Position numbers and translations under genes: made by a program. 64,000 nt of DNA, taken from the NCBI GenBank assembly GCA_002269645.1, contig NIVC01002256.1, positions 221,009 through 285,008 of the forward strand, given 5' to 3'. The DNA comes from Macrostomum lignano (lineage: Eukaryota). Below, piece by piece: positions 8,521-51,900 of this stretch. Within the stretch, counting starts at the first letter, position 1. Every line of letters begins with the position of its first letter. The notes beneath the pieces were generated by a model. It ran no database searches and was not told where the DNA came from. It was given only the letters and a program-made list of their open reading frames with translations.

Positions 8521-8629
8521 CATTTAATTAATAAGTTTAGTTGAAGGTTATTAAAATTTATTAAGAGCAAAACTTAAAATATTAACTAGATTAAGCAAAG
8601 GTGACTTATTATTAGGCTCATTCCATATA

Positions 8630-12497: not shown

Positions 12498-15148
<2,651 letters not shown>

Positions 15149-26591: not shown

Positions 26592-27055
26592 TTGATAGTT
26601 TTATCTCTGAAATTGCACCCTTTGATTTAATTCCGTAAAAATAATAATGAACTTTTAAGTAAAGTATAAGAAAAAGCAACTAAGTGTAGCTAACATCTTA
26701 AATTTAACAGTTTTTATTATGTATTTTACGTACTTTTTCCATATAAAAAGTAATCATTTTATCAGCTAAATTCTGCAGTTTGACTTAATTTTGTTTGTGT
26801 AAATATATATTTTAAAACCGACAACTTTGGGTCGATTTCATAACGACGACGACGATCCATAGTTAGTTAAGCCCACTTGCTTTCCTTCTTTTTCAGCCTT
26901 AAGATTTTTGAACTAGAAAAACCAATGTTTAAAACCGTTTCTATCAACAAGCAAGAAAATTACGCGTAAAAGGAGAAAGCGTGTAAATTTGAGGGTGATC
27001 CTTTGCCCTTCTGTAAGTAGTTTCATGCCTGGACATGCACATTTCATTTTAAAAT

Positions 27056-30000
27056 GGCAGTGCTTATCCCCACGGTACCGTAGGAATAATTTCTGTCTTA
27101 TTCCAACGGTACCGTGGGAATAATTTTCTGCTTATCCGCACGGCACACTGACGAGATAGCTGCCCCATCTTCTACATATGCCGTGGGGATAATTTTCTGC
27201 TTATCCGCACGGCACACTGACAAGATAGGGCGAATTGTTGAAGCAATGCAATAATCTATACAAGCAAATTGCTAATTTACATGTTTAGTAGAAGTCTACA
27301 ACAGAAGTGGCAATGCACTTTTCGGTATGATCTCCGGGGTCGTTCTCAAAGCTAGGTCACAACTTTTTGTTATTGCAAAAAAAGTTTATACATCGACCAA
27401 TAATCGTACAAAAAAAATTCTTTTGACAATTTCTGTAAGAAGCTGCTACTAAAACCACAAGAAAACTTGAAATTGAGAAGAAATCAAGGCTATTTGTTAT
27501 TCTTTGTTGCGGAAAATAAACGACAAAAATATTAAAGAGAAAATAAAATTTTCTTCCATTTTTATTTTAAATATGCAGTTAAATTTCTTTTGCAAAAATA
27601 AAAGAACAAGAAATTGACAAAGGAAATGTTTTTGAGCACAGCATTTTGTTACTCTGCTCCAAATCCCAGACATTTAAAATTATCGTGTGCGAAAAAGTGC
27701 GAAATTATTATAGCATGCACTCGAAAGAACTTCGATCAGTTTAACTAATCACTGAATTGAGAAGTCTAAATAAGTCTTGAAAGGTTGAATTAAAAATCAA
27801 GTTTTCACTATGTATCTTTTCAAAGGCAAGATGATTCGACAAATAAAGAATGTTCATTTTTACCTTGAATAGAATTGTTCATTTTTACATTAAATATAAT
27901 AAAATCTAACTAATAATAGAAAAAGTCAGGGAACTATCCTTGAACACCAAAAAGCACATTGTGGATTTAATATCGACTGCATGTTCCTTAATAAAGGAAT
28001 TCAGATACTAGTATATATTTGATTATTTGTAGCATAATTTCTGAAAACTATAACTTGCTTGATTTTACTTTAAGTACTCATTACATTAATACTTATACCA
28101 AAGCTACATGTACTTAAAATAAAAAATCATAGTTACTTATTAGACATTTTACTCCAATTAACCTAAAATAATTCAAATTTATTTTAATTAATTCATTTTT
28201 TGAAACTTTTTGGAAAATAGACAAAATTGAATTATTTAAATACCAAAAACCTACTAGCTTAACTAAAATAGCAATTAGTCTTTAAGAAAAGATTTCACTT
28301 GTTAATTGAGAAAAATGAGGATGTGCGAGGTGTAAAAATGCGAAAGAGCATGCAGGAAACAGAGACAAACAAAAATGTAGGTAATAGACACTGCACATGC
28401 ACATAATATGATAACCAGACATAATGCGCACACTGAAACACCAGTAGCAATGACGCCCAAGCTTTTGATGATCACAAGCGAAAAGGCAAAACCCAGCCAT
28501 CAATCAAAGAAGTAGACTATAGCACACATCTTGAGTGCATCACGCATTTTTTGCAGAGAAGCTCGAAAATTAACATTGTATTCTGTGCACAACCACCAAC
28601 TGCGACAGGGTCTGCCGGGGGATTTGTGGGCACGCGGTCGCGGATACAAATCGGAGGAGTCGCTGACCATTCTGAAATTACTAGCTAGTACATGTAATTT
28701 TGTGTATTAATATATTTAGCCCGCTTTATTTCTATGCTCTCGTCTGCCTCTCGTTAATGCATCCCCAGACTCATGCAATAATCAAACTTATGATCGAACT
28801 ATGCATGGCTTCCGTCCCTCGCTTTGAATCTCTCACCTCCCCATAGTTCCATCAACCTTACCGTAGTGGCTTCCTATGCAAAAATCATCCCTCCGCATCT
28901 TACACAGGCTACTTCAGGCTGTAGACTGTACTACACTATTAATTAGTTGCGCTAAGGAATCTACATGTATTTGCTCGCAGCGCAGCGCGCTGCTCAAAGA
29001 AGTTTAGATCTGTCTAGATATTCTAGTAATTTCAGGTTTGTCCATAGACTAGAGCTCATGAGATGAGAATTCCATTAACTAGTACGTTTAATGTAGGATT
29101 CATACATCGATTTTGCGTGCTTAAATGGTCTATGCACGAGTGCGCGCAGCGTGTGTGTGTGCTGTGCATACATATGTATAATATACGAGTAGTTTATGGG
29201 CCAAATTATTGTGTGGCACAATTCTTGGCATCACTCAGCAGGCACAAGATGCAGTTAAGCAGCGCACGAAAATTCTACAAAAGAAATTGAGCCTGGTTGA
29301 GGTGATGCGAGGAGGCAGATCCACACAATCTCAGTGAATACACCAGACTGCACCAAATACGAGTCCAGTCGAATGTGCGCACTGGTCTAAGCAGCACACG
29401 CATGTCCTCCTGACAATGACGGCACCTAGCTTCGTCCAAGCCTTTGCCAGCGTCACTGACAGCGTCAATACTACCATGCAGTGCCACCTGCAGCACCGAC
29501 AACGGCAATTCCTCCAGTTAGCCCACAACAGTGGCTAAACTGAGGGACAGGGAACCTACCCGCAGAAGACACACACATACACACACAGCACCGGCAGCAG
29601 CACTCTGACAGCATAACCTAAAGCTCCATGAGCTCAGTTTTCAAGCATTGAAGAAGCAGAAGCAGTCATCTTGAATCCAGGGATCAGGAAGAGTGTTGCA
29701 TGTCCGACATGTGCTGTTTCCGTGGCAAAAGGTGATGGAGCAAATTAATCAACACTTACTATCTAGCTCGTATTAAGACTAAAAAACTGAGGCAAGCTGG
29801 GATTAAACCAAAGAAAATTTTTTACTATACTTTTTTACCATATACTTTTACTATACTTCTATAGTATAGTAGAGAGGTACTCTATTTAAATGCAGTAAGA
29901 AGTGAAACAAATTTATATATTTAATTATTAAATTAAATTAATTCAAGGTAAATAACTAATTTAACCAATTTATTAGGAGTATTTAATATTATAATAAATT

Positions 30001-31525
30001 GATTTTTATACCTTACACGAAATAAGCTCTACATTCATTTCTTAGCTTGGGGCCCATCTGTATAAGGTCAGTTTCTTCAAAATGCTGATTAATTAATTAA
30101 GGCCTGTTGTCTTTACTTAAATTTATAAGGGCATCTTAGAAGTTAATATTACTATATAATACATGTATAATATTATTACTATATTATAATAATATAGTTG
30201 CAATTTTAATGACTATTGAATAAGTCTAAATGCTTCCCCTATTGACTCTAAATACATGGTATCTTTCCCTTCAGAAAAAATTAGCATAGAATGACTTGAT
30301 GAAAACAAAAAAAATCATTTCGAGATACACATTTGCTGATCATTCAGGTCAAATTTCAAGGTCCAGTTTTGCACATGTTTCTCTGTAGCTTGGTTACAAG
30401 GATTCTAATAAAAATATAATAAATATGTCCAATGAACTAACTGATACATAGCCAAATTGAAGTATTTTCAAAAACAAAAAAAATCATTTGCTCAGTTTAC
30501 TTTACTGGATATCTGTGTAAAATTTCAGCTCAAAAGGTGCTCCATGGAGAATGCTAGTGTGGTTACAGGATATGTATTTTGTGCTTCAAAGTAGGAGTTT
30601 ATTGCGATGCATGGTTGCTTTTAATTATTTTTATCAACAATAGTGCTCTATTTCATAACAATTTTTTACAAAAAGATAATAAGACATGTTTTTCTAATTA
30701 TCTGCATCAAAATGTATCATTTTAAGCGCACATTCTAGACGTCAGCTGAAAAATACATTTTGTGAGACGCAAAGAGGCTATCCCACCGGAAATGCTAGGC
30801 GCACAGTTAAGCGTCTATAAAATCATTTATAGTGCAGTTTATTAAGCTTTAAAAAAAATCTTAAATTAAATTTATATAAGCTTTCATTTTAAATGTAATA
30901 TAGCAAGTTTTCAACACAACAACAACTTTTTTAGCTACAGACATCATAGTGTCAAAAATTAGGACATCGGTGAAGTGATTGAATTTGAATTTTTTCATCA
31001 CCTAATATCGCCTAATACCGCAAGACAACTTAAAACACTTTTGCAACATAAATTTCAACCCAAAAATTATCTTTATTCACAGATGAAAGTGTCCTATTAT
31101 TTTCAATACGGCAGTAACAATAGTAAATGTTCCGAAAATTGTTAAAATTTTCGCTCCTCCCAGAATTTGAGAACGACCCTCCGGATTATACTTTGCTAAA
31201 AATTCAAATTATAAACAATTACTAGGCCAGGACCTAAAGCAATTTACCTTGGCTTAAATTATACGTCATAAATACAAAAAAGAGTTTTTGCATAAAAAGG
31301 CAATTAAATCTTTACTTCTCTAAAACTAATGGCCAAGCAAAGTTATGTTGTTATACTGCACTTAAACCATAAGTACTAAATTATTCCCACCGTCCTACGG
31401 CATATGTAGAAGATAGGGCAGCTATCTCGTCAGTGTGCTGTGCGGATAAGCAGAAAATTATCCCCACAGTACCGTTGGAATAAGACAGAAATTATTCCTA
31501 CGGTACCGTGGGAATAAGCACTGCC
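27056..31525. mobile_element. Non-autonomous Mutator/MULE-like DNA transposon, ~4.47 kb
   Basis: TIRs of ~130 bp (27056-27186 and 31395-31525) with only a few mismatches. GGC..GCC termini. Exact 9-bp direct repeat TTTTAAAAT at 27047-27055 and 31526-31534. No transposase ORF seen inside. Confidence 0.85.
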
Positions 31526-33339
31526 TTTTAAAATTGGCATTATTTGATTGCCTGTCTGGAATATAAATTATGCATTATCTTTTTTAGCTAGAGAATTCTT
31601 CTTATAAATTCATAATTGCCTTTTAATTTTACTCTTAAGCTGAGGCAGGCTGCTAGTGTTACTGCTAGGCCTATTACTACTATTAGTAAAGTATTAAAGT
31701 TGCCTAATAGTATTATTATTATTAGACATGAAGGTATAATATTTATTTTATTATGACATTAGGCTTTAAAGTTTAAATTAGGGTATTAAGCCTAAGTATT
31801 TTAGATATATCTATCAAGTGCTTTGTAAAAGTTTAGTAAAGGCTTTAGTCTTTAGAATTTAGAACTTTTCTAACAATACAATAGTGCATAATATTCTATT
31901 GTAGGCCTATCCTTACATTTAATTATTTGCTTTGAAATTTTAGTTACTATTTAGTTTATTGATAAATACTATAATAGATTTAATAGAAAGATTAATTAAG
32001 TTTAACAGATAAATTGATAATTATCAACTAGTAAAACTGGTAAATGGAAATCTTAGGCCTATAAATAAAGAGTTGTGCAATAAAACAGCAATAAAAATGT
32101 TGTGGATATAGGTAAATAGGCAGACATGGTTTTAAGTGTATTTACCAATAATGTTTTTGAGTAAATGAGTCTACTGCATTTGATTTGCACTGACTCTATA
32201 GTCAGGAAGATAGCCTTTTTCATGGAAAATTTAGGAGTAAAAAGGGGTTAGATATGCACTGTGCCAGCACAATATGGCACAAGAAAAAAAATTGCACTTT
32301 TTGTGCAAGACAAAATCTTATGACCAGACAATATTTTCTCTAATAGAAAATTAGCATGTAATTTATTTTTATTGGCATTTTTTGTTTGCCAGTGTATTGA
32401 GAGCTTTTTTAATTAATTTATGTAAACTTAGCATTTTCCATGAAAGAGATTCAAATACAAGTTTTATTAGTATTTTTCAAATGGCAAATTATTGATTTTT
32501 GCATTTTTTTCAAAAAGTTATAGTACATGTAGTGCAATCAAACTTTTTTGATAGGATTTGTTCTGGCATAGGCATGCTATGATCTTGACTATGGCACTGA
32601 CTGGCAATGGCCATTGACTAAGTCTACCTATCTAGTAGGCAGTCACAAGCATTTTATCTATTGTCTTTTCATTTCTTGATATAAAAATATATACTTTATA
32701 ACAAAAGAAATTAATTTTAGTTCCATCCATATACTAAAAATAGTCCATTGATATCTATCTAAGTAAGGTAGGTAGATATATTATTAATTAGAAAAAAATG
32801 GCTTAACCAGTTTTCTCCAAACTTGCACTATTCAATTAGATTTTTTTCTGTAATGGTACATTGATTGTGGCTAAGAAATTGCTCAATGTTAAAGGGATTA
32901 AATATTCAAAAACATGCTTTTTGCAACTTTTCAAGCAAGGTCAAGCAACTTTTCAACTTTATTGTATTGTAAGAATACTAAAGAAAAAACTGACTGGCCA
33001 AATTCTAATTGCGATAAAGGTTGCATTATACTAGTCTTTTTATTGTCTGTGTACTGACTGAATTTTTACTCTGAATTGAATTGTGTCAATGTTGAAAAGA
33101 CACAACAGTGTAGAAGCATAGCATAAGACTTGATTTAGATCACATTATTAATTGACAACTTTACTTGAAACTGATTTGGTATAAGTGTCAAATTATAAAT
33201 GCTGCAATTCGTTTAATAAATTCAACAAGAGCTAGCCTAGATGTGAACAAATTGAAATGCTAATGCAAAAACCTAGGTTCAAATCTTACTGATGTAAATT
33301 TTTTATTAAAAGCTTTTCTTAAAGAATTTATTGAAAACA

Positions 33340-34130
33340 ATGATTATTGCACTTGATGAGAAATGGATTGTTACACTAGCTGAGACATGGATTATTGCCA
33401 TTGATGTATAAAGGATTACTGCACTTTGAGTTGATAAGACAATGATTATTGCACTTTATGAGTAAAGGATTATTGCACTTGATGAGACATTGATTATTGC
33501 ACTTTATGAGTAAAGGATTATTGCACTAGCTAAGTCATGAATTGTTACATTTGATGAGCAAATGATTATTGCACTTGCTGAGATATCAATTATTGCATTT
33601 AATAAGACAATGATTATTGCACTAGATAAGTAAAATATTATTGCACTAGATAGAAAAAAATTATTACACTGTACTGACTGGAAAAAAACTATTGCATTAG
33701 CTAAGACATATATTATTAAATTACCTGAGAAAGTGATTATTGCATTAGCCAAGGAAATAGTTGCACTAGCTATCTGGTAGGTGCTTGCTATCTGGTAGGT
33801 ACTTGCTATCTGGTAGATATTTGCTATCTAGAGGATGCTTGATATTTGGGGGTTGCTTGCTATTTTATTTGCGGTGAGGGTACTTCTTATTGTATTTGGA
33901 TAGGAGGATGCTTGCTATCAAAGTATGCTTGCTATCTGGGCATGCTTGCTTTTGGGGGTGCTTACTATTAGGGGATGCTTGATATTGGGGAGACACGAGG
34001 CTTGCTCTTGGGGAGAGGGGATACTTGCTAATCTGGGGAATGTTTGCTATCTAGGAGGATGCTTGCTATCTAGGTTAATTTCTATCTGGGGGATGCTTGC
34101 TGTCTTGGGGATGTTTTCTATTTAGGGGAA
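33340..34130. repeat. Two adjacent old, degenerate tandem arrays (GATTATTGCACT core, then ATGCTTGCTATCTGG core)
   Basis: Recurrent cores at irregular spacing; the switch is at ~33770. Confidence 0.75.
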
Positions 34131-37100
34131 AGGCTTTCTATTTTTGTGAAGGCCTAATATTGTTGTCTTGTTATTTTTATTAAATAAGGTGATTTATAAA
34201 ACTGAAGAAATAACTTTAATTGTTCTTAAGAAAATGTTCTTTTAAATAGACTTGCATGAAAATTTTTTGATTCTTGCTTATTGGGTGGCCCAAAGGGGGC
34301 ACTAGATTGCTAGTAATTCTATGGCTTACTTTTCATAACACAATTTATGAGTTATACAAAAATTTATAGTTATATATCATTTTTATATGTAGTTTTATTT
34401 GTCACATATTTTAGACAAATGGGATAGCCCATTGTATAATATTTAAATATCAGGAAAAGTGGTTGTTGCAGTTTAGGCTATTAGTTTATTATTGCTATGC
34501 TTTGTAGATTTACTAGGTTTAGTTGGTAGGTCATTGCCACTAATCACTAACATCCTAGTATGTTAGTGATTAAAGAACTGTCAAGACACCAATGTAGTAT
34601 TTTTAATTCAACACAAACTTTTAAAAGAAAGAAAAGAAACATTATGATACAAAAGAGTGGTTTGTTACATTAATTCCCCTTTTACCTTAAATTTTTCTAA
34701 GTGCTTGGGCAAGACTCCTAGTGAGAGGCAAGATTCCTCTTTGTGCATTCTAACTCTATTCCCCTACCCCCTTTACCTTTAACTTCCTTAAATTCTGAGT
34801 TGAGTTGCAGAATGTAGCATAGGTGTTCAGGTAGGCTTTGTTTTCCCAGGAGCCCAACTGTTCTATATTAGTAAAGAGCCCAAAAATTTGTGGTTTACCA
34901 CTGCCATAATTACCTTCATAAATAAATAAATAAATAATATATAAATAAAAGCATATTTATCCTGTGTCTAGATTCTGCCCCTAAACTATGCCCTCCTACA
35001 TATCTAATAAGAAGACCATTTTAATTTTAACCAATCTTCTAGTTCCCAGTGAGCGGAGCGAACGCGCGAGGCACAAAGTGCCGAGCATGAGGAACAAACA
35101 GCCAGCCAATGCGCGAAGCGCATTGGGTGGTCTGGCTTGTGACGAATATAATAATATGAGACGTGTGCATCGAAAAAATGACAAGAAAAATCTCACAAAA
35201 ACTGCTGTAACTTCAAAACTACAAGTGCGAATTTCACAAGTGAGGTGTCATTTTAAAGAGAAGAATCTGATCTATTTAACGAGTATAGTTTTGTATGGAT
35301 TCACTGCGGAGAAAAGGAACAGGCTTCAGTTGAAATGTTTGTCTTAAGATTATGTCTTTACAAAAGTGCATTTCCTCATGCACATTAAAACTCGAGCTAA
35401 AAATGTTCGAGGGTTATAGGTGCGCCTTACTAAGATGCATAACATTATTGGGTTGTTTTTTTCAATTGTATCAAAAAGTTGGCACTTTGGTTGCAAAAAA
35501 TGCAAAAATTGAAAATGTACTTTTACAGTTTTTTGCATTTTTTTCTATACTGCTAATAGTTAAGCATACATACTATGCACCAATTGATGCGCAATTCAAA
35601 GATACACAAGTGTGGAAGTTTTCAATTCTTAAACATTTGAAATCAGAAAGTTATCGATGAAAGACTAAAAATCATGATCTCAAACTGATTTGAGGAAAAG
35701 TGCTCATTATAATTTTTGGAATATGGAAGAAACAATTCAACGCCGTCATCTAATTCCAAACTAACTGTACTTTAAGGTACTGCGATGATTTTTTTATTGA
35801 AAGAGCGAAACCTGTTTAAATATTTGAAAAATGGAAAAAAAGTACATTTTTTCATAGAAATACACTCTTTTGACTGCTTAATCCGATTTCCAACAACAAA
35901 ATAGTTGCTTTCCTGCTGGTGCAAACCGTTATTACAGTGAATTTTCAAAATTGCATACTGTGCCAAAAGTAAACTGAAGCTTAATATTTATAAACATTAG
36001 AAACGGGACCACTAATGGGTATTTTACTTTGGTTACTTACTATGGACTAAACTGGCACTGGCAGAGACAGATTTGAGAGAAACTAATTGCTCCATTGTAT
36101 TTGTATTTGGCTCCAGCGTTACAAATTACAATAGCTATTTCGGGGTCTAACCGGCTAAGTTATCAAAAAAGCTAGATACCAATCACCAGTTTCATCATCA
36201 GCTATACCTACCACGATTTTATAGTCACATGCAACAGTAATACCCTCCTTTAAAAGTTTTCAATATCTAAAATGATGTGTTAAATTTTATAAAATTTCAT
36301 AAACAGTGAAATTTTAGCTGTTTACGTGCTGGTGGTTTGAACGTAGCTACTTTGTGCGAAAATACACTGTCATTAATACCGTACCTATTATTGTATTTAT
36401 TGTATTGAAAGTTGATGTGTAAATTGTACTTTTCTATTTTTTTGTCATTCGTTATCGCACTCGGGCCGGCCTGCCTGCCTTGTGGGGTGTGGTGGCCTTG
36501 GCCACTTTCTCCCCCTTCTGCTAGGATCCAAAGCAAGCTTTCAAGTGTACATTTAATATTATCGATCGATTATTTAAAACAAGCCTCTAGTGGCTGGTGT
36601 TGAGAGTGAGTGGCCTTGAGTGTACGCGAAAGCAAGAGGAAGCCCATGGGCGGACTATATGAACCTTCCTTTAGTGGAAAGTTGGGCCTTGTGCATTGGA
36701 TAGTGTACGCTACACAAGACAGAAGGTAAAGAAAAAGAGAACGACAGGCTAGCCAATAGCGATAGCATGTGCTTCTTTCTCTCCAGTCCACTATGGTAGG
36801 GGGGGGAGGGGGGTGTCAGACGGCCCAACTCTAACCCCCATACCCAAAACAGCGTACATGTAGAATAAGAAGGGATTGGGTCCAGATAAGTCTTCCCAAA
36901 TGTACATGTATGTACAAAGACAAACACAGACAAGAAAAATGGCTCTAAAAACCATTGTTATTGTTACACTGTGTGTCTATTTTTATTAACTTGACTTTGA
37001 CTTGTCTTTACTCTAGCATGGTCAAGGTCTCAAGGATAATTACTGTTACTTCATACCAAATTTACAATTAATTGCATAAGATTAAGAAGGAATAATACAA

Positions 37101-37315
37101 TCGAGGTCGAACCCATGATCACTTGACCCACCCACCCATGATCACTTCTGATTCTGACCTACATGTATCTACTATATCCTGCCAGTTTCTCCAGTTTTAT
37201 GGGTCTTGGTGTCGGTGATTCGAGCAATTCCATTACATTTTATCGGTGCAGTGCGTCTATTAATGCTTAGCTACTTGTATATGTGTTGCAGAACTTATGC
37301 TCGTAGTTTCCCTTC

Positions 37316-38093
37316 TAGGGATGTTGACCCCGGGAGTGCTCCCCGGGGAGCTTGTCGGGGAATACTCTCCGGGGAATTTAACCGGGGACCCTGGGGAGAA
37401 AAAATATGAAAAAATGCATTTGTAACTTAATTTTTGCCATTAAAATAAGAAACTGATTCACAGAAAGCTGATTGAAACTCTGTCTATGCTCTTTTACCGC
37501 ATAATTGCTTATTTCAATGCATTACATGTATTTGAAACACAACACACGTTTGATTGTTTTTTCACTAATAAGTCATTCAATCAAGCAAATTGCACGTAGA
37601 AAAGAAACCCGTCAGGAAAAAGAAGCCTTACTGACTAGTGACTGCTGTGTTGGTCTGCGTTGACGGCTTGACGCAGGCGCAGCGCTGCGTCATGCGTCAG
37701 GCACTGACGCATAGGGGGGTGTCATACATATACTCCCTATTAGACAAGGACAAAATGGTGATTTACATATATATGCAAGAAATAAAATTCCGATTATAAA
37801 AACAGTCTCATTCATTAATTATCCTCTCACGAGCGTAGCTGTTTAGCATGCATTCCAACAAATGCACTTTTCCGATAAAGGTGCGCGCACGATTTCGTGA
37901 TGCCACATTGTCAAATACAGTTTAAAAAACATTGTTTAAAATTTTTACCCCTGCGCCTTGAACATGTAGTACAAAGCTTAAATCAAAGTTTAAAAAATTC
38001 CACTTACAATTTAAGTGCTCCGCCGTTTTTACTTATTTTTTCTTTCACCGGGGTCCCCGATAAGATAATTCCCTGGGGAATCGACATCCCTAA
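37316..38093. mobile_element. hAT-like MITE, ~780 bp
   Basis: Termini TAGGGATG..CATCCCTA(A). Degenerate inverted subterminal blocks (CCGGGGACCC / GGGTCCCCG). The 8-bp direct repeat TTCCCTTC lies at 37308-37315 and 38094-38101, with a one-base offset at the right end. Confidence 0.65.
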
Positions 38094-39017
38094 TTCCCTT
38101 CCTATAAATCATTTGACGTTAGAGACATTTTACAACTCTCGCCCTACTTTATCTATTAGGCTAACTTTATGTATGACACGACGCAAAATATTAGGAGCAT
38201 CAGCGTTAATAATGCCTTGAAAGTCTTTAAATAATCGATACAACACTAGGTATTATAAAATTCCAACCCCAAAGCTCACTGGGGCGAAAAGACTTTGTCT
38301 TCATTAACTAGTCCATAAAAACTCAATGTCCTTAATTGGATGATTTATTGTTTATAATTTATCTGTTAGGCTTATATTTAATAGATGATTGACAGATAGC
38401 CAGGTTAATAAAAATATAAACAAAAAATTATGGTAACTATTTTTTTGGATATGCATTTCTAATAACATTAGTTGCTAGTTATCACTAATATTAAAAAAGA
38501 GTTTATCTATTGCTATCTCATTCTAATATCATAATGCTAATGTTGTATCAAATATTTTGTGGCAGACAAAAAAGTGGCAGATGAACTGACAGACATCAAC
38601 CATAAGTCTTATATGTACCCCATATTGACTAACCACTGACTAAGTCGACCTATCCTCACCCAACTCTCAGACTTGGTGCCATAGAAATTTTCTAGCTTTA
38701 AAGCTTTTTTAAGAGAAACTCGAGTCTATTGGGTTATAGACTTAACCAATAGACATGTATGCTACCATATGCATATTGTGTACTTCCATATTGGAATAAG
38801 TTTGAAAAATCTATAGGCATGCAGCATAGACCACAAAAATAGCCCAAAAGTGCAACAAATTAATAGAAGCATTAAAATACACTGCATAAAAGCATAACAC
38901 AAACACTGAAGATGAAATGAAAAGTGTTTCGATGAGGGCCTATGTTATTTTACTTCTTAAATTATTTTATAATAACTCATTTGCTGAAAAAGCCATAATG
39001 TGGCACAGCCCACACAC

Positions 39018-39146
39018 ATGAATCACTCCCCATCATCTGCCCCGCAGGTGGACACATCGGCAGAGCCGCCTGAGTGCCTGCCGGCGCTAGTGCTAGCTGA
39101 TCACAATCGAGTCCCACCTTGGGACCCTGATCCGTTTGGCACTTGA
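39018..39146 (+). promoter_or_regulatory. Candidate regulatory upstream ORF (uCC-like) with PPW motif, 5' of the ODC-like gene
   Basis: Reads MNHSPSSAPQVDTSAEPPECLPALVLADHNRVPPWDPDPFGT*, with PPWDP at 39114-39128 and the stop at 39144-39146, 185 nt before the main ATG. A CAG acceptor at 39045-39047 could instead join it to an upstream exon. Confidence 0.7.
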
Positions 39147-39330
39147 ACTCTGGATTGTTGACTTTTTTCTGTTTTTTTAGTGTTTCCTCTTAAATATTTT
39201 ATTGCCTCCATTGTCTGTCGCAATCAATCAGATTTAATTTTTTATACGCATCATATACATGTCATACTACTAACAAAGACTTGATTTAGATCAGCAGCAA
39301 GTCTAGCGTTGTTTTTGTGTTATTTGCCTG

Positions 39331-41891
39331 ATGAGAGAATCGCAACTGGAGCATCAGCAGCCTCAGCAGCAGCACCTGCTCTCAGCCCCAACACCGGCAG
39401 TTTGTCCACCAATTGGCTGCGCTCTGGCGCCTCACCTGCCCAATCTTGAGCAATGCGATCAGCCGGTTGTGGCCTGCGACTTGGCCAGCGCCCAGCGCTG
39501 TCTGGCCGACTGGTGCAGCCGGTTTCCTGGCGTGCACGCGTCAACCAGCGCCCAGACTCTGGGCAGCCGGCCACTGACCCACGTGTTGGCTCTCAGCGGC
39601 CGCGTGTCCTTTCGGGCCTACTCTAAGGTGAGGCTGACGGTTAAAATAACCTGTCTTTGACCTTATTTGCTATAGTAATAATAGTAGTAATTGAAGCAAT
39701 TCAGAGTTAAGTGTCTTGCTCAAAGACACACAAATATTATTCCGAGTTGACCCGACGTGTACTTCGCCCACGTTACTTGACCTTAATTGCCCAAATTGAC
39801 CTTTATTGTCCCAATCGACCATAATTGTCCCAATTGACCTTGACCATAATTGTCCCACTTGACCTTGACCATAATTGTCCCACTTGACCTTCAATTGTCC
39901 CAATTGACCTTCAATTGTCCCAATTGACCTTCAATTGTCCCAATTGACCTTCAATTGTCCCAATTGACCTTCAATTGTCCCAATTGACCTTCAATTGTCC
40001 CAATTGACCTTCAATTGTCCCAATTGACCTTCAATTGTCCCAATTGACCTTGATTGAGCAGTCCGACCTGAACGCTGCTGTCTCCGCCGGAGTCCCGGGC
40101 CACGCCATCCTGCTGGCCAACCCGTGCAAAACTCGCGGCCTGGCCAGGCACGCCCGTCGCCTTGGCGTCGGCGTCACCGTATTCGACTCGGAGCCGGAGC
40201 TGGCCCGCCTAGCCGCGGCTTGGCCGGACGTCGAGCTGCTGCTTCTGCTGGCCGCATCGCCCCGCTGCCACCGGCTGGGCGCCCGGCCCGAAGAGGCGCC
40301 CCGCCTGCTGGCCGCCGCCAGACGCCACGGACTGCGAGTTGCCGGCGTAGCCGTCTGGTTCGGCGACGACAACGAATGCGAGGGCGACGGTGGCGGCGAG
40401 GTCAACTCCGACGTCGACGCCGAGTGGGCTGCTGCCGCGTCGACCGCCTGCGGTACTCTGGCCTTGGCCAGGCGTCTCGGCCATGCCAATGCCAATGTTG
40501 TCGACCTCGGATGTCTGTCCACCGGCGCCTTGGCCGGGCGGGCCCTGCCGGCCTTTGCGAACGCTGCCGGTGAGGCTTTTTATATTTTCCATTATAGTAA
40601 GAGAGTTATTTTTATACGTCAAAATTAGAATTCTTATATAATGCTACTGTAGAATTATTGTAACTACTCGTATTTTGCCTAACTTTATTAAAAACAAATG
40701 TTGGTTTGCGGCATAATTTTTTGAGAGTAAAATGAGTGTGATTCTGAATAATGCGATTTTTATGAAATCACCAATTAAAATTAACAGGCTATTAATATAA
40801 AAAAGCTGTAAATACTACGCTTGCTACAGCGTCACAACAATAATACAGGGTATTTCTTTGCAAACATTTAAGCCTTTAAAACCATTCTTAGAAACGAAGT
40901 AATTTTTATAACGTTTTTCGAGCGGTTTCTCTCAAAATGCCTGCCTTAATAGGTATTGGAAACGGTGGCTGTCAGCCTCGTCTACTCTGCGACCTGACTC
41001 CGGCGTTGCTAGCCGAATCCGTTGTCATGGCAACCAGGGTGTTGGCTAAAGCGGCGGCCGAGCAGCCAGGCTGTGGCGGCTACAGCTACCGGCTCAGCGG
41101 CCCGGGCCTCGGCGGCCAACTTTGCGGCCTCTTCAGCCGTGAGGGCGAGGGCGGCGGCTGCAGCGGCAGCAGAGACGGCGTGCCAAGCCGACTGGCCGAC
41201 TGCGGCGGCGACCCGTTGAACCTCGTGCTGCCAGAGCTCAGCGTCGGTGACTGGTTGCTATGGCGCGGCCTGAGGGCCTGTCCGACCGCTGCCAGGCTGA
41301 TGCACTGGTGAGCCGTGGCAGTTTTTTAATTCTAAGAGTGGCTTCGAATTCGGCTTTTCTTCCTGGAAATTTACATGTGCTGTCTTGAACTTTGCTAGAA
41401 CTTTTTTACTTAGAACTTTAGAATTTCCCTTCGAACTTTAGGAGTTCATTCTTGAGATATCCCTTCCAACTTTAAAGTTCATTCTTGGGATTTCCCTTCC
41501 AACTTTAAAGTTCATTCTTGGGATTTCCCTTCCAACTTTAAAGTTCATTCTTGGGATTTCCCTTCCAACTTTAAAGTTCATTCTTTGAATTTCCCTTTCA
41601 ACTTTAAAGTTCATTCTTGGGATTTCCCTTGAACTTTAAAGTTCGCTCTTGGGATTTCCCTTCCAACTTGAAAGTTTATTATTGAGATTTCCCTTCTAAC
41701 TTTAAAGTTTATTCTTTAAATTTAAAATTTATATATTGGATTTTTTAGTATTCCCCTATCGATACTGTTAACTTCGCGATGTTCAAATTCTATTTTCAAT
41801 TTCCCTAATCGTTTGCAGCCTCTTCACCGGCGAGCTGATGGAGACAAAGCCCGCAGCTTGTCTGGATGAGGAGCCGCTGCCGGCTGCTTAA
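39331..41891 (+). CDS. Ornithine-decarboxylase-fold protein lacking catalytic residues (antizyme-inhibitor-like), ~410 aa
   Basis: Exons 39331-39627, 40062-40569, 40953-41307 and 41819-41891; phases 0,1,2; open frame. ODC-family motifs include VVACDL..DW..RFPGV, GVPGHAILLANPCK, GVGVTVFDSEPELARL, LRVAGV, VVDLG and LPELSVGDWLLW. Confidence 0.88.
39780..40050. repeat. Tandem array, 20 bp unit (CAATTGTCCCAATTGACCTT), in ODC-like intron 1
   Basis: Ends ~10 nt before the AG at 40060-40061. Confidence 0.95.
41440..41710. repeat. Tandem array, 33 bp unit (GGGATTTCCCTTCCAACTTTAAAGTTCATTCTT), in ODC-like intron 3
   Basis: About 8 copies; the unit contains the 12-bp palindrome AACTTTAAAGTT. Confidence 0.92.
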
Positions 41892-45564: not shown

Positions 45565-45755
45565 AAAATCCTAATTTTCTAAATGAAGCTTTCTGAATAT
45601 CAATAGAGCTATAAAAAGGTTAAGCACATCAAAAGATAAATATTGGGTCTGTCTCCTATCAAAAGCAAAAACAATTTTTGTGTGTAATCTCTGTAAGCAT
45701 TTTTTGCAAAACTTGCTTTCTTAAATTTTCCAAGAATCATAAGTTTCCTGTCCTT
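45565..45755. mobile_element. Degenerate partial copy (right half) of the 25970-26591 MITE
   Basis: ATCCTAATTTT..GAAGCTTT.TGAATATCAATAGAGCTATAA..CATCAAAAGAT..TGTCTCCTATCA..AATTTTCCAAGAA is shared with 26368-26560. Confidence 0.75.
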
Positions 45756-45943
45756 TAGCAAAGCTATGCTTTCTAAATATGACTATTATTTTAAAATATA
45801 ATGCCTGTTTGTATTTTATTAATAACTCAATCAATCCACTTCAGTGTCTTTGCCCTGCTGAAGTTGAATCTCAAATTCAGTCTGCTAGATTTGACCAGCA
45901 GAACAGGGGCTGCGAAACAAATCTTTTTATTTTTAAGACACTC

Positions 45944-48900
45944 ATGTCTGCTCAAAGTACTCAGCAGCATCAGCATCAGCTAGAGAGGCACGACTCCAAT
46001 CCGGTGTGGGCCGAGTACCTCGATCCTCCGCTGCAGTACACCGCCATTGCCTCCTATACTGGCGCCGATGATGACGAACTCAGCTTCACGGCTGGCGCTA
46101 GGATTCTTGTTGTATCTCGCGATCCTCGAGACAGTCGGGACGAGGGCTGGTTTGTAGCCATTGCGCCGGCTTCTCCTAGCCAGGGAGGTGCAAGCGCTGG
46201 AGAATATTCCAGGCCAGAATCTCAGCGTACCGTGCTCAAATTGTTGCCAGGAAATTTTGTTCGACCGTCTGCTGAGATTGCCAGCGCCTGTCAGCAGGAG
46301 GTGCAGGCAGTTGGAAGGTGAATATTGCTTCTGGGTTATTCTGTATCCAGCATTGATGATATATTGAGATTGTGTTTGATCTGTGCCGTTCTATGATAAA
46401 TCTATTTGATGTGTGCCGCTGTGTAATATAATCTGTTTGATCTGTGCCGCTGTGTAATATAATCTGTTTGATCTGTGCCGCTGTGTAATTAAATCTGTTT
46501 GATCTGTGCCGCTGTGTAATATAATCTGTTTGATCTGTGCCGCTGTGTAATTAAATCTGTTTGATCTGCGCCGCTGTGTAATATAATCTGTTTGATCTGT
46601 GCCGCTGTGTAATAAAATCTGTTTGATCTGTGCCGCTGTGTAATTAAATCTGTTTGATCTGCGCCGCTGTGTAATATAATCTGTTTGATCTGTGCCGCTG
46701 TGTAATATAATCTGTTTGAACTGTGCCGCTGTGTAATATAATCTGTTTGATCTGCGCCGCTGTGTAATTAAATCTGTTTGATCTGTGCCGCTGTGTAGTT
46801 AAATCTGTTTGATCTGTGCTGCTGTGTAATTAAATCTGTTTGATCTGTGCCGCTGTGTAATATAATCTGTTTGATCTGTGCCGCTGTGTAATATAATCTG
46901 TTTGATCTGTGCCGCTGTGTAATATAATCTGTTTGAACTGTGCCGCTGTGTAATATAATCTGTTTGATCTGCGCCGCTGTGTAATATAATCTGTTTGATG
47001 TGCCGCTGTGTAATATAATCTGTTTGATCTGTGCCGCTGTGTAATATAATCTGTTTGATCTGTGCCGCTGTGTAATATACTCTGTTTGATCTGTGCCACT
47101 GTAATATAATCTGTTTGATCTGTGCCGCTGTGTAAAATAATCTGTTTGATCTGATTTTCCCAGTTTAAAAAAAAAACAAAGCACTTCAATAGACACCTGC
47201 ATCTTTCATCCACCCCACAGCGTTCCCCAGCATCAGCAAGATCCTCATGGGCATCATCAGCATGAGCATGAGCAGCAGCAGTCGCCACCCACGGTCTCAT
47301 CCGATGAGATCGCATACGACTGTCTCCTCGGATCTGGTGGCTTCGCCGAAGTCCACCGAGCCACCTGGCGCGGCCAGCCAGTCGCAGTGAAACTGTTCGG
47401 CAGCGGCTTCTGCCCCGACCAGGTGCGCCGGGAGGCCGAGCTTATCTGGCTGTGCCGCCACCCGAACATTGTCCGAGTTCTGGCCATTGTGGCCGAGCCG
47501 CCACCCGCTCTGCTGTTGCAATTTGCCGCTGGCGGAGCTCTTAATAATTTTTTACGCGGCCGGCGACTTCCACCGGACGTGATTGTGAACTGGGCCGGAC
47601 AGGTGGCCGAGGCCATGCGATTCCTGCACGAGGGCGCACCTGTGACCGTCTTCCACCGGGACCTGAAGTCTAGCAACAGTGAGTGGCTCTGCGTACCTGG
47701 GTAGGAGATTGGGCTTGGATACGTAAATTGGTAGACATTACAGGTAGATAGGTAGACACTACAGGTAGATAGACACTACAGGTAGATAGACACTACAGGT
47801 AGATAGACACTACAGGTAGATAGGTAGACACTACAGGTAGATAGGTAGACACTGCAGGTAGATAGGTAGACACTACAGGTAGATAGACACTACAGGTAGA
47901 TAGGTAGACACTACAGGTAGATAGGTAGACACTACAGGTAGATAGGTAGACACTACAGGTAGATGGACACTACAGGTAGATAGGTAGACACTGCAGGTCG
48001 ATAGGTAGACACTATAGTTGGATGGGTAGACACTACAGGTAGATAGACACTACAGGTAGGTAGGTAGACACTGCGGGTAGAAAGGTAGACACTATAGTTA
48101 GATAGGTAGACACTATAGTAGATAGGTAGAAGACACTATCTGCAGATAGGTAGACACTATAGTTAGATAGGTAGACACTATAGTTAGATAGGTAGACACT
48201 ATGCAGATAGGTAGACACTATAGTTAGATAGGTAGACACTATAGTTAGATAGGTAGACACTATAGTTAGATAGGTAGACACTAAAGTTAGATAGGTAGAC
48301 ACTATGCAGATAGGTAGACACTATAGTTAGATAGGTAGACACTATAGTTAGATAGGTAGACACTATAGTTAGATAGGTAGACACTATAGTTAGATAGGTA
48401 GACACTATAGTTAGATAGGTAGACACTATAGTTAGATAGGTAGACACTAAAGTTAGATAGGTAGACACTATAGTTAGATAGGTAGACACTAAAGTTAGAT
48501 AGGTAGACACTATGCAGATAGGTAGACACTATAGTTAGATAGGTAGACACTATAGTTAGATAGGTAGACACTATAGTTAGATAGGTAGACACTATAGTTA
48601 GATAGGTAGACACTATAGTTAGATAGGTAGACACTATAGTTAGATAGGTAGACACTAAAGTTAGATAGGTAGACACTATAGTTAGATAGGTAGACACTAA
48701 AGTTAGATAGGTAGACACTATGCAGATAGGTAGACACTATAGTTAGATAGGTAGACACTATGCAGATAGGTAGACACTATAGTTAGATAGGTAGACACTA
48801 TGCAGATAGGTAGACACTATAGTTAGATAGGTAGACACTATAGTTAGATAGGTAGACACTATAGTTAGATAGGTAGACACTAAAGTTAGATAGGTAGACA

Positions 48901-51900
48901 CTATGCAGATAGGTAGACACTATAGTTAGATAGGTAGACACTATAGTTAGATAGGTAGACACTATAGTTAGATAGGTAGACACTATAGTTAGATAGGTAG
49001 ACACTATAGTTAGATAGGTAGACACTATAGTTAGATAGGTAGACACTAAAGTTAGATAGGTAGACACTATAGTTAGATAGGTAGACACTAAAGTTAGATA
49101 GGTAGACACTATGCAGATAGGTAGACACTATAGTTAGATAGGTAGACACTATAGTTAGATAGGTAGACACTATAGTTAGATAGGTAGACACTATAGTTAG
49201 ATAGGTAGACACTATAGTTAGATAGGTAGACACTATAGTTAGATAGGTAGACACTATAGTTAGATAGGTAGACACTATAGTTAGATAGGTAGACACTATA
49301 GTTGATGGTAGACACTATGCAGATAGGTAGACACTATGCAGATAGGTAGACACTATAGTTAGATAGGTAGACACTATAGTTAGATAGGTAGACACTATAG
49401 TTAGATAGTTAGACACTATAGTTGGATGGTAGACACTATGCAGATAGGTAGACACTATGCAGATAGGTAGACACTATGCAGATAGGTAGACACTATAGTT
49501 AGATAGGTAGACACTATAGTTGATGGTAGACACTATGCAGATAGGTAGACACTATGCAGATAGGTAGACACTAAAGTTAGATAGGTAGACACTATGCAGA
49601 TAGGTAGACACTATGCAGATAGGTAGACACTATAGTTAGATAGGTAGACACTATGCAGATAGGTAGACACTATAGTTAGATAGGTAGACACTATGCAGAT
49701 AGGTAGACACTATAGTTAGATAGGTAGACACTATAGTTAGATAGGTAGACACTATAGTTGGATAGGTAGACACTATAGTTAGATAGGTAGACACTATAGT
49801 TAGATAGGTAGACACTATAGTTAGATAGGTAGACACTATGCAGATAGGTAGACACTATAGTTAGATAGGTAGACACTAAAGTTAGATAGGTAGACACTAT
49901 GCAGATAGGTAGACACTATGCAGATAGGTAGACACTATAGTTAGATAGGTAGACACTATGCAGATAGGTAGACACTATAGTTAGATAGGTAGACACTATG
50001 CAGATAGGTAGACACTATAGTTAGATAGGTAGACACTATAGTTAGATAGGTAGACACTATAGTTAGATAGGTAGACACTATAGTTAGATAGGTAGACACT
50101 ATAGTTAGATAGGTAGACACTATGCAGATAGGTAGACACTATAGTTAGATAGGTAGACACTAAAGTTAGATAGGTAGACACTAAAGTTAGATAGGTAGAC
50201 ACTATGCAGATAGGTAGACACTATAGTTAGATAGGTAGACACTATAGTTAGATAGATAGACACTATAGTTAGATAGGTAGACACTATAGTTAGATAGGTA
50301 GACACTATAGTTAGATAGGTAGACACTATAGTTAGATAGGTAGACACTATAGTTAGATAGGTAGACACTATAGTTAGATAGGTAGACACTAAAGTTAGAT
50401 AGGTAGACACTATAGTTAGATAGGTAGACACTAAAGTTAGATAGGTAGACACTATGCAGATAGGTAGACACTATAGTTAGATAGGTAGACACTATGCAGA
50501 TAGGTAGACACTATAGTTAGATAGGTAGACACTATGCAGATAGGTAGACACTATAGTTAGATAGGTAGACACTATAGTTAGATAGGTAGACACTATAGTT
50601 AGATAGGTAGACACTATATTAGATAGGTAGACACTATAGTTAGATAGGTAGACACTAAAGTTAGATAGGTAGACACTATAGTTAGATAGGTAGACACTAA
50701 AGTTAGATAGGTAGACACTATGCAGATAGGTAGACACTATAGTTAGATAGGTAGACACTAATGTTAGATAGGTAGACACTATAGTTAGATAGGTAGACAC
50801 TATAGTTAGATAGGTAGACACTATAGTTAGATAGGTAGACACTATAGTTAGATAGGTAGACACTATAGTTAGATAGGTAGACACTATAGTTAGATAGGTA
50901 GACACTATAGTTGGATGGGTAGACACTATGCAGATAGGTAGACACTATGCATATAGGTAGACACTATAGTTAGATAGGTAGACACTATAGTTAGATAGGT
51001 AGACACTATAGTTAGATAGTTAGACACTATAGTTGGATGGGTAGACACTATGCAGATAGGTAGACACTATGCAGATAGGTAGACACTATGCAGATGGGTA
51101 GACACTATAGTTAGATAGGTAGACACTATAGTTGGATGGGTAGACACTATGCAGATAGGTAGACACTATGCAGATAGGTAGACACTAAAGTTAGATAGGT
51201 AGACACTATGCAGATAGGTAGACACTATGCAGATAGGTAGACACTATAGTTAGATAGGTAGACACTATGCAGATAGGTAGACACTATAGTTAGATAGGTA
51301 GACACTATGCAGATAGGTAGACACTATAGTTAGATAGGTAGACACTATGCAGATAGGTAGACACTATAGTTAGATAGGTAGACACTATAGTTAGATAGGT
51401 AGACACTATAGTTAGATAGGTAGACACTATAGTTAGATAGGTAGACACTATAGTTAGATAGGTAGACACTATGCAGATAGGTAGACACTATAGTTAGATA
51501 GGTAGACACTATAGTTAGATAGGTAGACACTATAGTTAGATAGGTAGACACTATAGTTAGATAGGTAGACACTATAGTTAGATAGGTAGACACTATAGTT
51601 AGATAGGTAGACACTATGCAGATAGGTAGACACTATAGTTAGATAGGTAGACACTAAAGTTAGATAGGTAGACACTATAGTTAGATAGGTAGACACTATG
51701 CAGATAGGTAGACACTATAGTTAGATAGGTAGACACTATAGTTAGATAGGTAGACACTATAGTTAGATAGGTAGACACTATGCAGATAGGTAGACACTAT
51801 AGTTAGATAGGTAGACACTATAGTTAGATAGGTAGACACTATAGTTAGATAGGTAGACACTATAGTTAGATAGGTAGACACTATAGTTAGATAGGTAGAC

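Follow-up and report, generated by a model that had tools for sequence, protein, structure and literature searches.

What might a homolog of the polyamine enzyme ornithine decarboxylase (ODC) still do once the Schiff-base lysine of the enzyme (K69) has been replaced? The question is raised by a gene of the flatworm Macrostomum lignano, which occupies positions 39331–41891 (+) of the window (the whole stretch of DNA analysed, 64,000 nucleotides) and encodes an ODC homolog of 410 amino acids. A first-pass annotation, made from the DNA sequence, had described the product as an ODC pseudoenzyme under selection for a non-enzymatic role, and as more degenerate than the vertebrate antizyme inhibitors.

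The protein is encoded by four exons (Table 1), with GT/AG boundaries throughout and a single open frame when joined; all three junctions between them were confirmed by intronless contigs (L003, L004 and L005). The four-exon frame that had been noted earlier is thus intact, but the gene has a fifth exon, a 5′ leader exon (exon 0) about 12 kb upstream which ends at position 27012. The acceptor of coding exon 2 is a NAGNAG: the alternative start at 40059 would add one Gln, and the distal AG is the one used by the cDNA orthologs and by the annotated protein P0001, giving 410 amino acids. Three M. lignano copies (that in the window, L001 and L002) have an intact frame, and the copy described here is a homeolog or allele of the M. 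lignano gene BOX15_Mlig015075, which belongs to family “A” (group A). Minisatellites are abundant in the region, and the G+C content of the exons is unusually high.

Table 1. Positions of the features of the gene within the window, with the corresponding residues of ODC in brackets. uCC, upstream conserved coding region.
Feature	Position	Strand	Content
uCC, first part (exon 0)	26959..27012	+	conserved AUU start AAAAUUACGCGUAAAA; reads ITRKRRKRVNLRVILCPS; then GTAAGT donor at 27013
Leader intron (predicted), 12,035 nt	27013..39047	+	splits uCC in phase 0; donor GTAAGT, acceptor CCCCGCAG/GTGGAC
uCC, second part	39048..39146	+	VDTSAEPPECLPALVLADHNRVPPWDPDPFGT; stop 39144-39146
Spacer from uCC stop to main AUG, 184 nt	39147..39330	+	holds 4-codon AUG uORF 39259-39273
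Coding exon 1	39331..39627	+	residues 1-99; Q75 (K69; codon 39553-39555), R95 (D88)
Coding exon 2	40062..40569	+	residues 100-269 and first base of codon 270; L161 (R154), W198 (H197), G249-C250-L251 (glycine loop)
Equivalent of antizyme-binding element	40116..40220	+	residues 118-152 (human ODC 111-145)
Coding exon 3	40953..41307	+	D282/P285 (E274/R277), G354-D355 (C360/D361), LPELSVGDW, R376/C378 (G387/Y389)
Coding exon 4	41819..41891	+	TAA stop 41889-41891

Judged by sequence and by structural model, the protein has the full ODC fold and is a homolog of the Orn/DAP/Arg decarboxylases (fold-type III) over both domains. It matches Pfam Orn_Arg_deC_N (PF02784) at 7e-10, and its top match in the PDB is human ODC (8e-12), AZIN1 giving a weaker match (8e-7). 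The profile of the family aligns with the ODC profile in hhalign with a probability of 100% (E 2.4e-49, 390 columns), and the AlphaFold2 model (pLDDT 78) matches human ODC in Foldseek at 3.7e-23 with a TM score of 0.66. The motifs ANPCK, FDSExEL and LPELxVGDW, which had already been recognized in the first reading of the sequence, are common to the protein and canonical ODC. The C-terminal domain has the lowest conservation and the lowest model confidence; the C-terminal half was placed by profile–profile alignment, the alignment to the canonical-ODC HMM leaving gaps there. At the N-terminus, a region of 45 residues is found only in the family, where it is conserved, and has no counterpart in ODC.

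At 21 positions involved in catalysis, cofactor binding or dimer formation, only three residues are identical to those of ODC (G171, G235 and D361); the other 18 are altered, three of them conservatively and 15 non-conservatively. Both HMMER and hhalign place Q75, and no Lys, at the position of K69. The set of residues that bind PLP (D88, R154, H197, S200, G235–237, E274, R277 and Y389) reads R, L, W, N, G-C-L, D, P and C, G235 alone being identical. Among the remaining substitutions are D332S, D364N, F397M and N398H, in addition to R154L, and C360 corresponds to G354 in the family alignment, with the nearest Cys (C352) two residues upstream. The losses at K69, D88, H197, E274, R277 and Y389 that were first read from a hand alignment were all recovered by HMMER and/or hhalign, together with the replacement of G387; the glycine loop, which had been given as lost, has indeed lost G236 and G237 (C250 and L251), but G235 is still there. 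Because the Schiff-base Lys, the PLP-stacking His, the phosphate-binding glycine loop, R277, Y389 and C360 are absent, the protein, as judged from its residues, cannot be a PLP-dependent decarboxylase. The loss of K69 is real, but the uniqueness that had been implied for it was overstated: planarian ODC6 has K69S (PMC5574924), and K69 is also absent from homologs in many organisms (P0034, P0037, P0089, P0113, P0140, P0145, P0151 and P0152). One of these, P0037 (K69S, D88S), was considered as an ortholog of planarian ODC6 and rejected, its source being the euglenid Jenningsia.

Rather than being a pseudogene, the gene is intact and selectively maintained and has expressed orthologs. Two further sample sets contain spliced cDNA contigs of orthologs with 80% and 65% identity, which carry the same substitutions. 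Within group A, dN/dS is 0.16–0.27 at dS 0.76–1.15 (Fisher p below 1e-24), and 190 residues are invariant throughout the family. The proposal of a pseudoenzyme under selection is borne out by the intact frame, the shared substitutions of the ortholog cDNAs and a dN/dS far below 1. Of the outcomes that the annotation had named as refuting it, none of those readable from sequence occurred: no Lys aligns at K69, the orthologs are expressed, and dN/dS is not near 1. There is a second group of dead paralogs, group B (Mlig005245; dN/dS 0.33, p<1e-20), which has the same uCC, and both groups are present together in all three sample sets. D88R and R154L are common to A and B, which implies that inactivation is older than the duplication that produced A and B, and older than the divergence of the three Macrostomum-type lineages sampled.

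An exhaustive profile search of 1.84 billion proteins found the clade restricted to Macrostomum-type samples, with four representatives at E<1e-20. In a neighbour-joining tree, A and B together are monophyletic with 100% bootstrap; the tree does not place the pair among the ODCs, its attachment to other long-branch sequences lacking K69 having a support of only 17–20%. The restriction of the clade to Macrostomum-type samples, the better PDB score to ODC than to AZIN1, and the different pattern of key residues all argue that the protein is not an ortholog of vertebrate AZIN1 or AZIN2. The suggestion in the first-pass annotation that catalysis was lost separately from the vertebrate AZINs agrees with this.

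The leader of the gene holds an open reading frame of 50 codons, divided between exon 0 and exon 1, which by its sequence can be classed as a uCC: it has a non-AUG start, the tripeptide PPW near its C-terminus (codons 41–43), and conservation at the level of the peptide. The AUU start lies in a 16-nt context that is conserved between groups A and B as well as between samples. The exon-0 sequence of the uCC also occurs in the cDNAs L004/L005 (from the ortholog with 65% identity), whose leader ORF has no in-frame AUG, and in the group B loci L007, L009 and L013. The M. lignano leader junction (27012/39048) was inferred from the orthologous cDNA (...SPF/VDASS...), and the position of the uCC intron is identical in groups A and B in the three sample sets; about 4.5 kb of this intron (27060–31525) is missing from the M. 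lignano copy L001. An in-frame ATG at 39018 was considered as the start of the uCC and rejected, as it sits in the leader intron; the uCC begins instead with the AUU of exon 0.

The sequence DHN(R/S)xPPWDPDP is kept in every group A and group B leader, the third-base differences being synonymous, and dN/dS of the uCC is 0.34. The C-terminal ends are ...DPDPFGT, ...DPDP or ...DPDPTTG followed by the stop, and none is Pro-Ser, whereas the animal uCC consensus ends in Pro-Ser (PMC2811004). In the uCC of mouse Azin1, PPW lies at codons 47–49 (bioRxiv 10.1101/710061). Leader ORFs with ...NKKPPW occur in canonical ODC cDNAs of other organisms as well. The mechanism of uCCs is the subject of PMC2811004, PMC11550727, PMC9082881 and 10.1101/710061, and the class of regulation is that of Ivanov et al. 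2008/2018.

No stretch of the protein is better conserved than the equivalent of the antizyme-binding element. The identity of this element with human ODC is 46%, compared with 18–24% in the rest of the protein, and groups A and B are invariant at 43% of its positions, compared with 15–23% elsewhere. Five residues of the element are common to ODC, AZIN1 and AZIN2 (PMC4066113): K115, A123, E138, L139 and K141 of ODC correspond to K122, A130, E145, L146 and R148 (a change of K to R), all invariant in group A, and group B retains four of the five, L139 being Ala. Two further positions determine affinity in AZIN1, namely K125, which raises the affinity for antizyme, and the Lys at position 140 (PMC3084279). 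Here, a basic residue (R132) occupies position 125, and A147, not a Lys, occupies position 140. Since the element also belongs to the structural core of the barrel, the fact that it is conserved does not specifically prove that it binds antizyme.

On balance, it seems somewhat probable that the protein is a polyamine-repressed antizyme decoy, i.e., a protein similar to an antizyme inhibitor, which would have arisen independently of vertebrate AZIN1 and AZIN2. At high polyamine levels, ribosomes translating the uCC would stall at PPW, scanning ribosomes would queue behind them, and the main ORF would be left untranslated. At low polyamine levels, the protein would be made, as a monomer, and could bind antizyme via the retained element, whereupon active ODC and polyamine uptake would be released from antizyme. 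Points in favour are that the protein is an ODC homolog whose sequence lacks catalytic competence, and that the five residues shared by ODC and the AZINs are kept in group A with the single change of K to R; furthermore, an antizyme gene is reported for M. lignano (PMC1874602) and its polyamine synthases have been retained (PMC12803844). Points against are the Ala at position 140, the Ala at L139 in group B, the uCC that ends in DPDP(FGT) rather than in Pro-Ser, and the behaviour of planarian ODC5 and ODC6 (see below), which are the nearest analogs described. In addition, no canonical, K69-bearing M. lignano ODC, the presumed client enzyme of such a circuit, was found among the matches listed. 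The source of the top-scoring canonical match, P0008, and of its relatives is not Macrostomum but marine and other metatranscriptomes; there was no M. lignano entry among the top 120 relatives of P0008, and no match in the literature for M. lignano together with ODC1.

A rather less likely, though possible, explanation is that the protein is a dead ODC paralog with a job outside antizyme and putrescine, as proposed for planarian ODC5 and ODC6, and that the uCC couples its synthesis to polyamine status or is a leftover. RNAi of planarian ODC5/ODC6 produces a phenotype which putrescine does not rescue and DFMO does not mimic and which is unchanged when other ODC-pathway genes are silenced at the same time; on these grounds, the authors exclude an AZIN-like role and propose roles in wound response and epidermal differentiation (PMC5574924). 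In ODC6, whose RNAi phenotype is independent of putrescine, R154A and H197F/Y accompany K69S and D88S (PMC5574924). The extreme degeneration of the Macrostomum protein (three of 21 key residues identical), its conserved N-terminal region without counterpart in ODC, and the long life of two paralog groups would all suit such a job. It is harder to reconcile with the high conservation of the antizyme-binding element, which exceeds that of any other stretch, and with the constraint on the uCC peptide in both paralog groups, which argues for continued polyamine-linked control. Orthology to planarian ODC6 is also unsupported, the profile search having found no planarian-like sequence near the clade.

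One could go further and regard A and B as two ancient, almost wholly “hollowed-out” ODC paralogs whose synthesis is gated by polyamines via the uCC and whose function is no longer the sequestration of antizyme; perhaps, as planarian ODC5/6 hint, they form a pair that converts polyamine status into a signal for wound response, differentiation or regeneration. This is doubtful, but if true, the result would be a polyamine-sensing output module made from a dead enzyme.

It is quite improbable that the protein is a regulatory subunit which pairs with an active ODC, or which joins the second dead paralog in an A/B heterodimer, in the way of the trypanosomatid prozymes of AdoMetDC and deoxyhypusine synthase. 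Dead paralogs that regulate enzymes of the polyamine pathway via heteromers are known (PMC3663545), and A and B occur together. The active sites of ODC span the dimer, with K69 contributed by one subunit and C360 by the other (PMC5574924), and both are lost here; pairing with ODC would therefore poison the active enzyme, as neither half of the shared active site is present. However, the residues of the dimer have been replaced (K169R, R277P, D332S, D364N, G387R and Y389C; roles of these residues in ODC catalysis and dimer, PMC5518511), and changes at 277, 332 and 389 are those which set the monomeric state of AZIN1 (PMC6313458). In addition, much of the interface is formed by the C-terminal domain, where both conservation and confidence of the model are lowest.

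That the locus lacks a function, as a pseudogene in decay or an artefact of annotation, has very little probability and is already contradicted. The loss of almost all catalytic residues, the minisatellite-rich region and the high G+C content of the exons might have suggested it, but three M. lignano copies have an intact frame, an in-frame 6-nt indel in the intron just upstream of the exon-1 acceptor leaves the gene undisturbed, orthologs at dS of about 0.8–1.15 have dN/dS of 0.16–0.27 with 190 family-invariant residues, and spliced transcripts are present in other samples. Least probable of all is that the protein is still an enzyme with another substrate or another cofactor: in its favour are the retained fold, the presence of D361 (substrate-binding) and the conservative change of E274 to Asp, but K69, H197, R154, R277, Y389, G236/G237 and C360 are all replaced non-conservatively, and no fold-type III PLP enzyme is known to function without the PLP lysine.

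The putative antizyme decoy resembles vertebrate AZIN1 in several ways. Both are derived from ODC and, in the Macrostomum protein by prediction, inactive as decarboxylases, with positions 277, 332 and 389 replaced; both retain the antizyme-binding element with a basic residue at 125; and both have an AUU-initiated uCC with PPW near its end (at codons 41–43 of 50 here). In contrast, AZIN1 dates from early vertebrates (PMC2811004), whereas this clade is found only in Macrostomum-type samples. Human AZIN1 (4zgz_A) retains K69, as the first-pass annotation had stated, and also H197, the GGG loop and E274, none of which the Macrostomum protein has; it was therefore correct to call the latter the more degenerate. 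The two also differ at position 140 (Ala here, Lys in AZIN1) and in the end of the uCC. If the protein is indeed a decoy, the antizyme/antizyme-inhibitor circuit would have been reinvented outside vertebrates, including its polyamine-sensing uORF, in a tractable model of regeneration for which RNAi and transgenesis have been reported. The gene also offers a clean system in which to ask if invertebrates use the PPW/uCC mechanism that was established with mammalian AZIN1.

Planarian ODC5 and ODC6 (Dugesia japonica and Schmidtea mediterranea; Cassella et al. 2017, PMC5574924) are likewise flatworm ODC paralogs with altered key residues in animals that have an antizyme gene, and ODC6 is without K69 (Ser), D88, R154, H197, G236, E274 and R277. 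However, ODC6 keeps C360, D364, G387, Y389 and F397, which the Macrostomum protein does not, and the substitutions differ (K69S and D88S in ODC6, K69Q and D88R here). The planarian proteins have RNAi phenotypes, whereas the Macrostomum protein is known here from sequence. Inactive ODC homologs have been described as recurrent (Ivanov, Firth and Atkins 2010, J Mol Evol 70:289), and, as represented in papers which cite that work (PMC5518511, PMC5574924), they share with the present case an ODC duplication, loss among about 20 critical residues, retention under selection and a presumed regulatory role; the difference here lies in a lineage-specific pair (A and B) and in an unusually complete loss (18 of 21 residues, 15 non-conservatively). 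The discovery is thus incremental in kind, because the literature already contains inactive ODC paralogs, among them flatworm proteins in which K69 is substituted.

With canonical ODC (EC 4.1.1.17), the Macrostomum protein shares the TIM barrel and β-sheet domain, the three fold motifs and a leader of the uCC type. It differs in lacking the PLP lysine and nearly all cofactor, substrate and dimer residues, and it has no C-terminal degron-like tail of the kind found in mammalian ODC. Almost all catalytic residues are gone, but the antizyme-binding patch and the translational sensor have been retained; as an extreme natural experiment, the case therefore shows which parts of ODC serve regulation and not catalysis.

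The ornithine decarboxylase (ODC)-like gene has four coding exons, set in A+T-rich, minisatellite-laden surroundings, which join into a single open frame with GT/AG at every boundary. The first-pass annotation had described an intact four-exon frame: the coding frame is indeed open, but there is a further leader exon 12 kb upstream. The acceptor of exon 2 is a NAGNAG tandem (gAGcAG), at which the proximal AG would give an extra Gln after K99 and the distal AG, the one used in the annotated relative and in every cDNA ortholog, gives 410 amino acids. The closest database protein (P0001, 'hypothetical protein BOX15_Mlig015075g3 [Macrostomum lignano]'; 98% identity) was found on two contigs of GCA_002269645.1; therefore, the gene in the window is a gene of the free-living flatworm M. 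lignano, a further homeolog or allele of BOX15_Mlig015075, from which its coding sequence differs at 18 nucleotides (10 synonymous, 8 non-synonymous). Tandem repeats are unusually abundant in the window, including in introns of the ODC-like gene and of a gene for a histone-binding WD40 protein.

Features of the window, with positions in nucleotides
Feature	Position	Strand	Remarks
Minisatellite array	1132-2393
RBBP4/CAF-1 p48-type histone-binding WD40 protein, exons	12498-15145	+	PF12265 2e-31 and WD40 repeats; minisatellites in introns
Minisatellite array	16471-17357
Minisatellite array	22783-23806
Leader exon	ends 27012		followed by GTAAGT
Leader intron segment	27060-31525		~4.5 kb
Leader acceptor	39047/39048		CCCCGCAG/GTGGAC
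Stop codon of leader frame	39144-39146
Four-codon AUG uORF	39259-39273		MSYY and stop; between uCC stop and main start codon
ODC-like gene, coding part	39331-41891	+	exons 62-72% G+C, GC3 76%
Coding exon 1	39331-39627	+	GT/AG, open frame
Intronic minisatellite	39777-40051		20-bp unit x13
NAGNAG acceptor	40057-40061
Coding exon 2	40062-40569	+	GT/AG, open frame
Coding exon 3	40953-41307	+	GT/AG, open frame
Intronic minisatellite	41423-41716		33-bp unit x9
Coding exon 4	41819-41891	+	GT/AG, open frame
Weak SH3-like ORF	45743-46318	+	under Pfam cut-off
Minisatellite array	46373-47153
Satellite	47730-52761		21-bp unit, ~247 copies, 5 kb
Protein-kinase-domain exon fragments	53871-54544	+	PF00069/PF07714
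Minisatellite array	62001-63072

Orthologs were obtained as intronless, full-length contigs from two Logan contig sets ('Macrostomum-type samples'): L003 (SRR28338166; 80% identity, 5′-truncated), and L004 and L005 (SRR30276804, SRR30276812; 65% identity). Each splice junction of the coding exons is thereby confirmed, and the contigs show the gene to be transcribed in related animals. Gln stands at the K69 position in every ortholog, 190 residues are invariant, and Nei–Gojobori dN/dS is 0.16–0.27 at dS 0.76–1.15 (Fisher p 1e-24 to 1e-39), well under ~1, in keeping with the selection claimed in the first-pass annotation. With an intact frame, transcribed orthologs and such ratios, a pseudogene is effectively excluded.

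In Pfam the protein matches one model alone, that of the N-terminal PLP-binding domain (PF02784, 7e-10); among solved structures, sequence search ranks human ODC first (8e-12), with antizyme inhibitor 1 (AZIN1) behind it (8e-7). The family profile and one built from 71 canonical ODCs, in which human ODC is identical to PDB 2on3_A, aligned end to end (probability 100%, E 2.4e-49, 390 columns). The AlphaFold2 model (mean pLDDT 78, pTM 0.79; barrel >90; residues 1–25, 322–358 and 398–410 poorly modelled) finds its Foldseek matches, over ~400 columns, among ODC-family structures of human, trypanosome and viral origin (E 3.7e-23, TM 0.66). At 21 key positions, whose roles are described in PMC5518511, three residues are identical and three conservatively changed (human to Macrostomum: K69 to Q75, D88 to R95, E94 to D101, R154 to L161, K169 to R170, G171 to G172, H197 to W198, S200 to N203, G235 to G249, G236 to C250, G237 to L251, E274 to D282, R277 to P285, D332 to S330, C360 to G354, D361 to D355, D364 to N358, G387 to R376, Y389 to C378, F397 to M385, N398 to H386). 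This map reproduces every hand alignment made earlier (K69Q, D88R, H197W, glycine loop, E274/R277, Y389). The protein is more degenerate at active-site positions than human AZIN1 (4zgz_A), which, as had been stated for K69, retains that lysine and also H197, the GGG loop and E274. A residual enzyme, with Gln at K69 and three of 21 key residues left, is effectively excluded.

Apart from ordinary ODCs, HMMER found no more than three further close relatives when 1.84 billion representatives were scanned exhaustively: P0010 (M. lignano BOX15_Mlig005245, g1-3), and P0004 and P0007, which belong to the two sample sets that gave the orthologs. Both this second family (group B; ~470–510 amino acids, dN/dS 0.33) and that of the gene under study (group A) are therefore present in every sampled animal. 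Group B also lacks the K69 lysine (Asp by family alignment, a gap under hmmalign); D88R and R154L are common to both groups. In a neighbour-joining tree, A, B and A+B each received 100% bootstrap; A+B has no supported position among ODCs. Thus, inactivation is older than the A/B duplication, which in turn is older than the split of the three sampled lineages. Group B has a longer C-terminal tail, whose end, C(C)SV(L/M)LS, is conserved (P0004, P0007, P0010, P0155).

The leader was found to contain a uCC (upstream conserved coding region). In described uCCs, which have a non-AUG start, usually AUU, and adjacent prolines close to the end, a polyamine-dependent stall at PPW has the effect that scanning ribosomes queue and the main ORF is repressed (PMC2811004, PMC11550727, PMC9082881, 10.1101/710061). 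Upstream of the start codon lies a frame for ...VDTSAEPPECLPALVLADHNRVPPWDPDPFGT and a stop; the corresponding peptide in L004/L005 is ...VDASSSEPPDSPKRSVGGDHNRIPPWDPDP and a stop, and every group B cDNA and genomic locus has it too. The cDNA frame extends upstream via KITRKK(K/R)..., with no in-frame AUG, and the distant leader exon reads AAAAUUACGCGUAAAAGG.... An intron interrupts the frame at an identical codon boundary in both groups (group B: L013:2397-2460 and 5771-5875; also leaders of L007, L009-L011), and the window, the 65% ortholog and a group B locus have the same 16 nucleotides around the AUU. Over the 12 final codons that the window and L004 share, four differences are synonymous and one is conservative; dN/dS of the whole uCC is 0.34. 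As in mouse Azin1, there is an AUU start and PPW near the end, at codons 41–43 of 50 when spliced, compared with 47–49 in mouse (same four sources); unlike described animal uCCs, the frame has no Pro-Ser end. Because K69-bearing canonical ODC cDNAs from marine and other metatranscriptomes, unrelated samples, carry similar elements to the Macrostomum DHNRxPPW (...HDSNKKPPW or ...NNNNKKPPW and stop; L006:55-273, leaders of L015 and L016; P0008, P0159, P0053), the uCC would most simply have been inherited from an ancestral ODC gene. The other M. lignano copy (L001) lacks the ~4.5-kb leader intron segment (junction L001:3228-3215) and has instead an 800-bp segment (3473-4272) matching window 8612-9406, inverted, which points to a dispersed repeat and to turnover of introns between the copies of the gene.

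Conservation within the protein is highest in the antizyme-binding element (human ODC 111–145), with 46% identity to human ODC versus 18–24% elsewhere, and with 43% of positions invariant across both groups versus 15–23% elsewhere. All five element residues conserved among ODC, AZIN1 and AZIN2 (PMC4066113) are retained (K122, A130, E145, L146, R148); there is Arg at position 125, at which a Lys accounts for the higher affinity of AZIN1 for antizyme (PMC3084279), and Ala at position 140. Residues of the dimer interface have been substituted, among them 277, 332 and 389, replacement of which makes AZIN1 monomeric (PMC6313458). In M. lignano there is an antizyme gene (PMC1874602), and the synthases for spermidine and spermine have been kept (PMC12803844). 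On account of these features and the retained uCC, the best-supported reading, somewhat better than an even chance, is of a monomer that would bind antizyme as a decoy, its synthesis repressed by polyamines through polyamine-dependent translation, with a presumed physiological effect, and evolved independently of vertebrate AZINs.

The element also belongs to the protein's structural core, so that finding it conserved is no specific sign of antizyme binding; no active M. lignano ODC was among the matches listed. In planarians five of six ODC homologs have substituted key residues, and knock-down of ODC5 or ODC6 by RNAi produces a wound-related phenotype that putrescine does not rescue and DFMO does not reproduce and that is unaltered by co-silencing other ODC-pathway genes, the authors arguing against an AZIN-like role (PMC5574924). 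Therefore, two other readings remain: a polyamine-independent function, which those planarian results favour and which is rather unlikely here, and a heteromer or 'prozyme'-like role, which is improbable.

ODC homologs without catalytic activity have arisen repeatedly (Ivanov, Firth and Atkins 2010, as cited in PMC5518511 and PMC5574924), and K69-substituted flatworm paralogs have been published (PMC5574924). Profile search found many K69-less homologs in protists and metatranscriptomes, with Ser, Arg, Asn or Gly at K69 (P0034, P0037, P0047, P0089, P0111, P0113, P0131, P0132, P0139, P0140, P0145, P0151, P0152); most are from metatranscriptomes, one from the euglenid Jenningsia fusiforme. What the Macrostomum locus contributes is a lineage-specific, very old paralog pair with near-total loss of the active site, in which both the antizyme-binding patch and the uCC are retained, in a host, M. 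lignano, that serves as a genetically tractable regeneration model. Among the nearest described analogs is planarian ODC6 (K69S, D88S, R154A, H197F/Y, G236D, E274Q, R277K; PMC5574924): both proteins have lost K69, D88, R154, H197, G236, E274 and R277, with Ser in place of the lysine in the planarian and Gln in Macrostomum.
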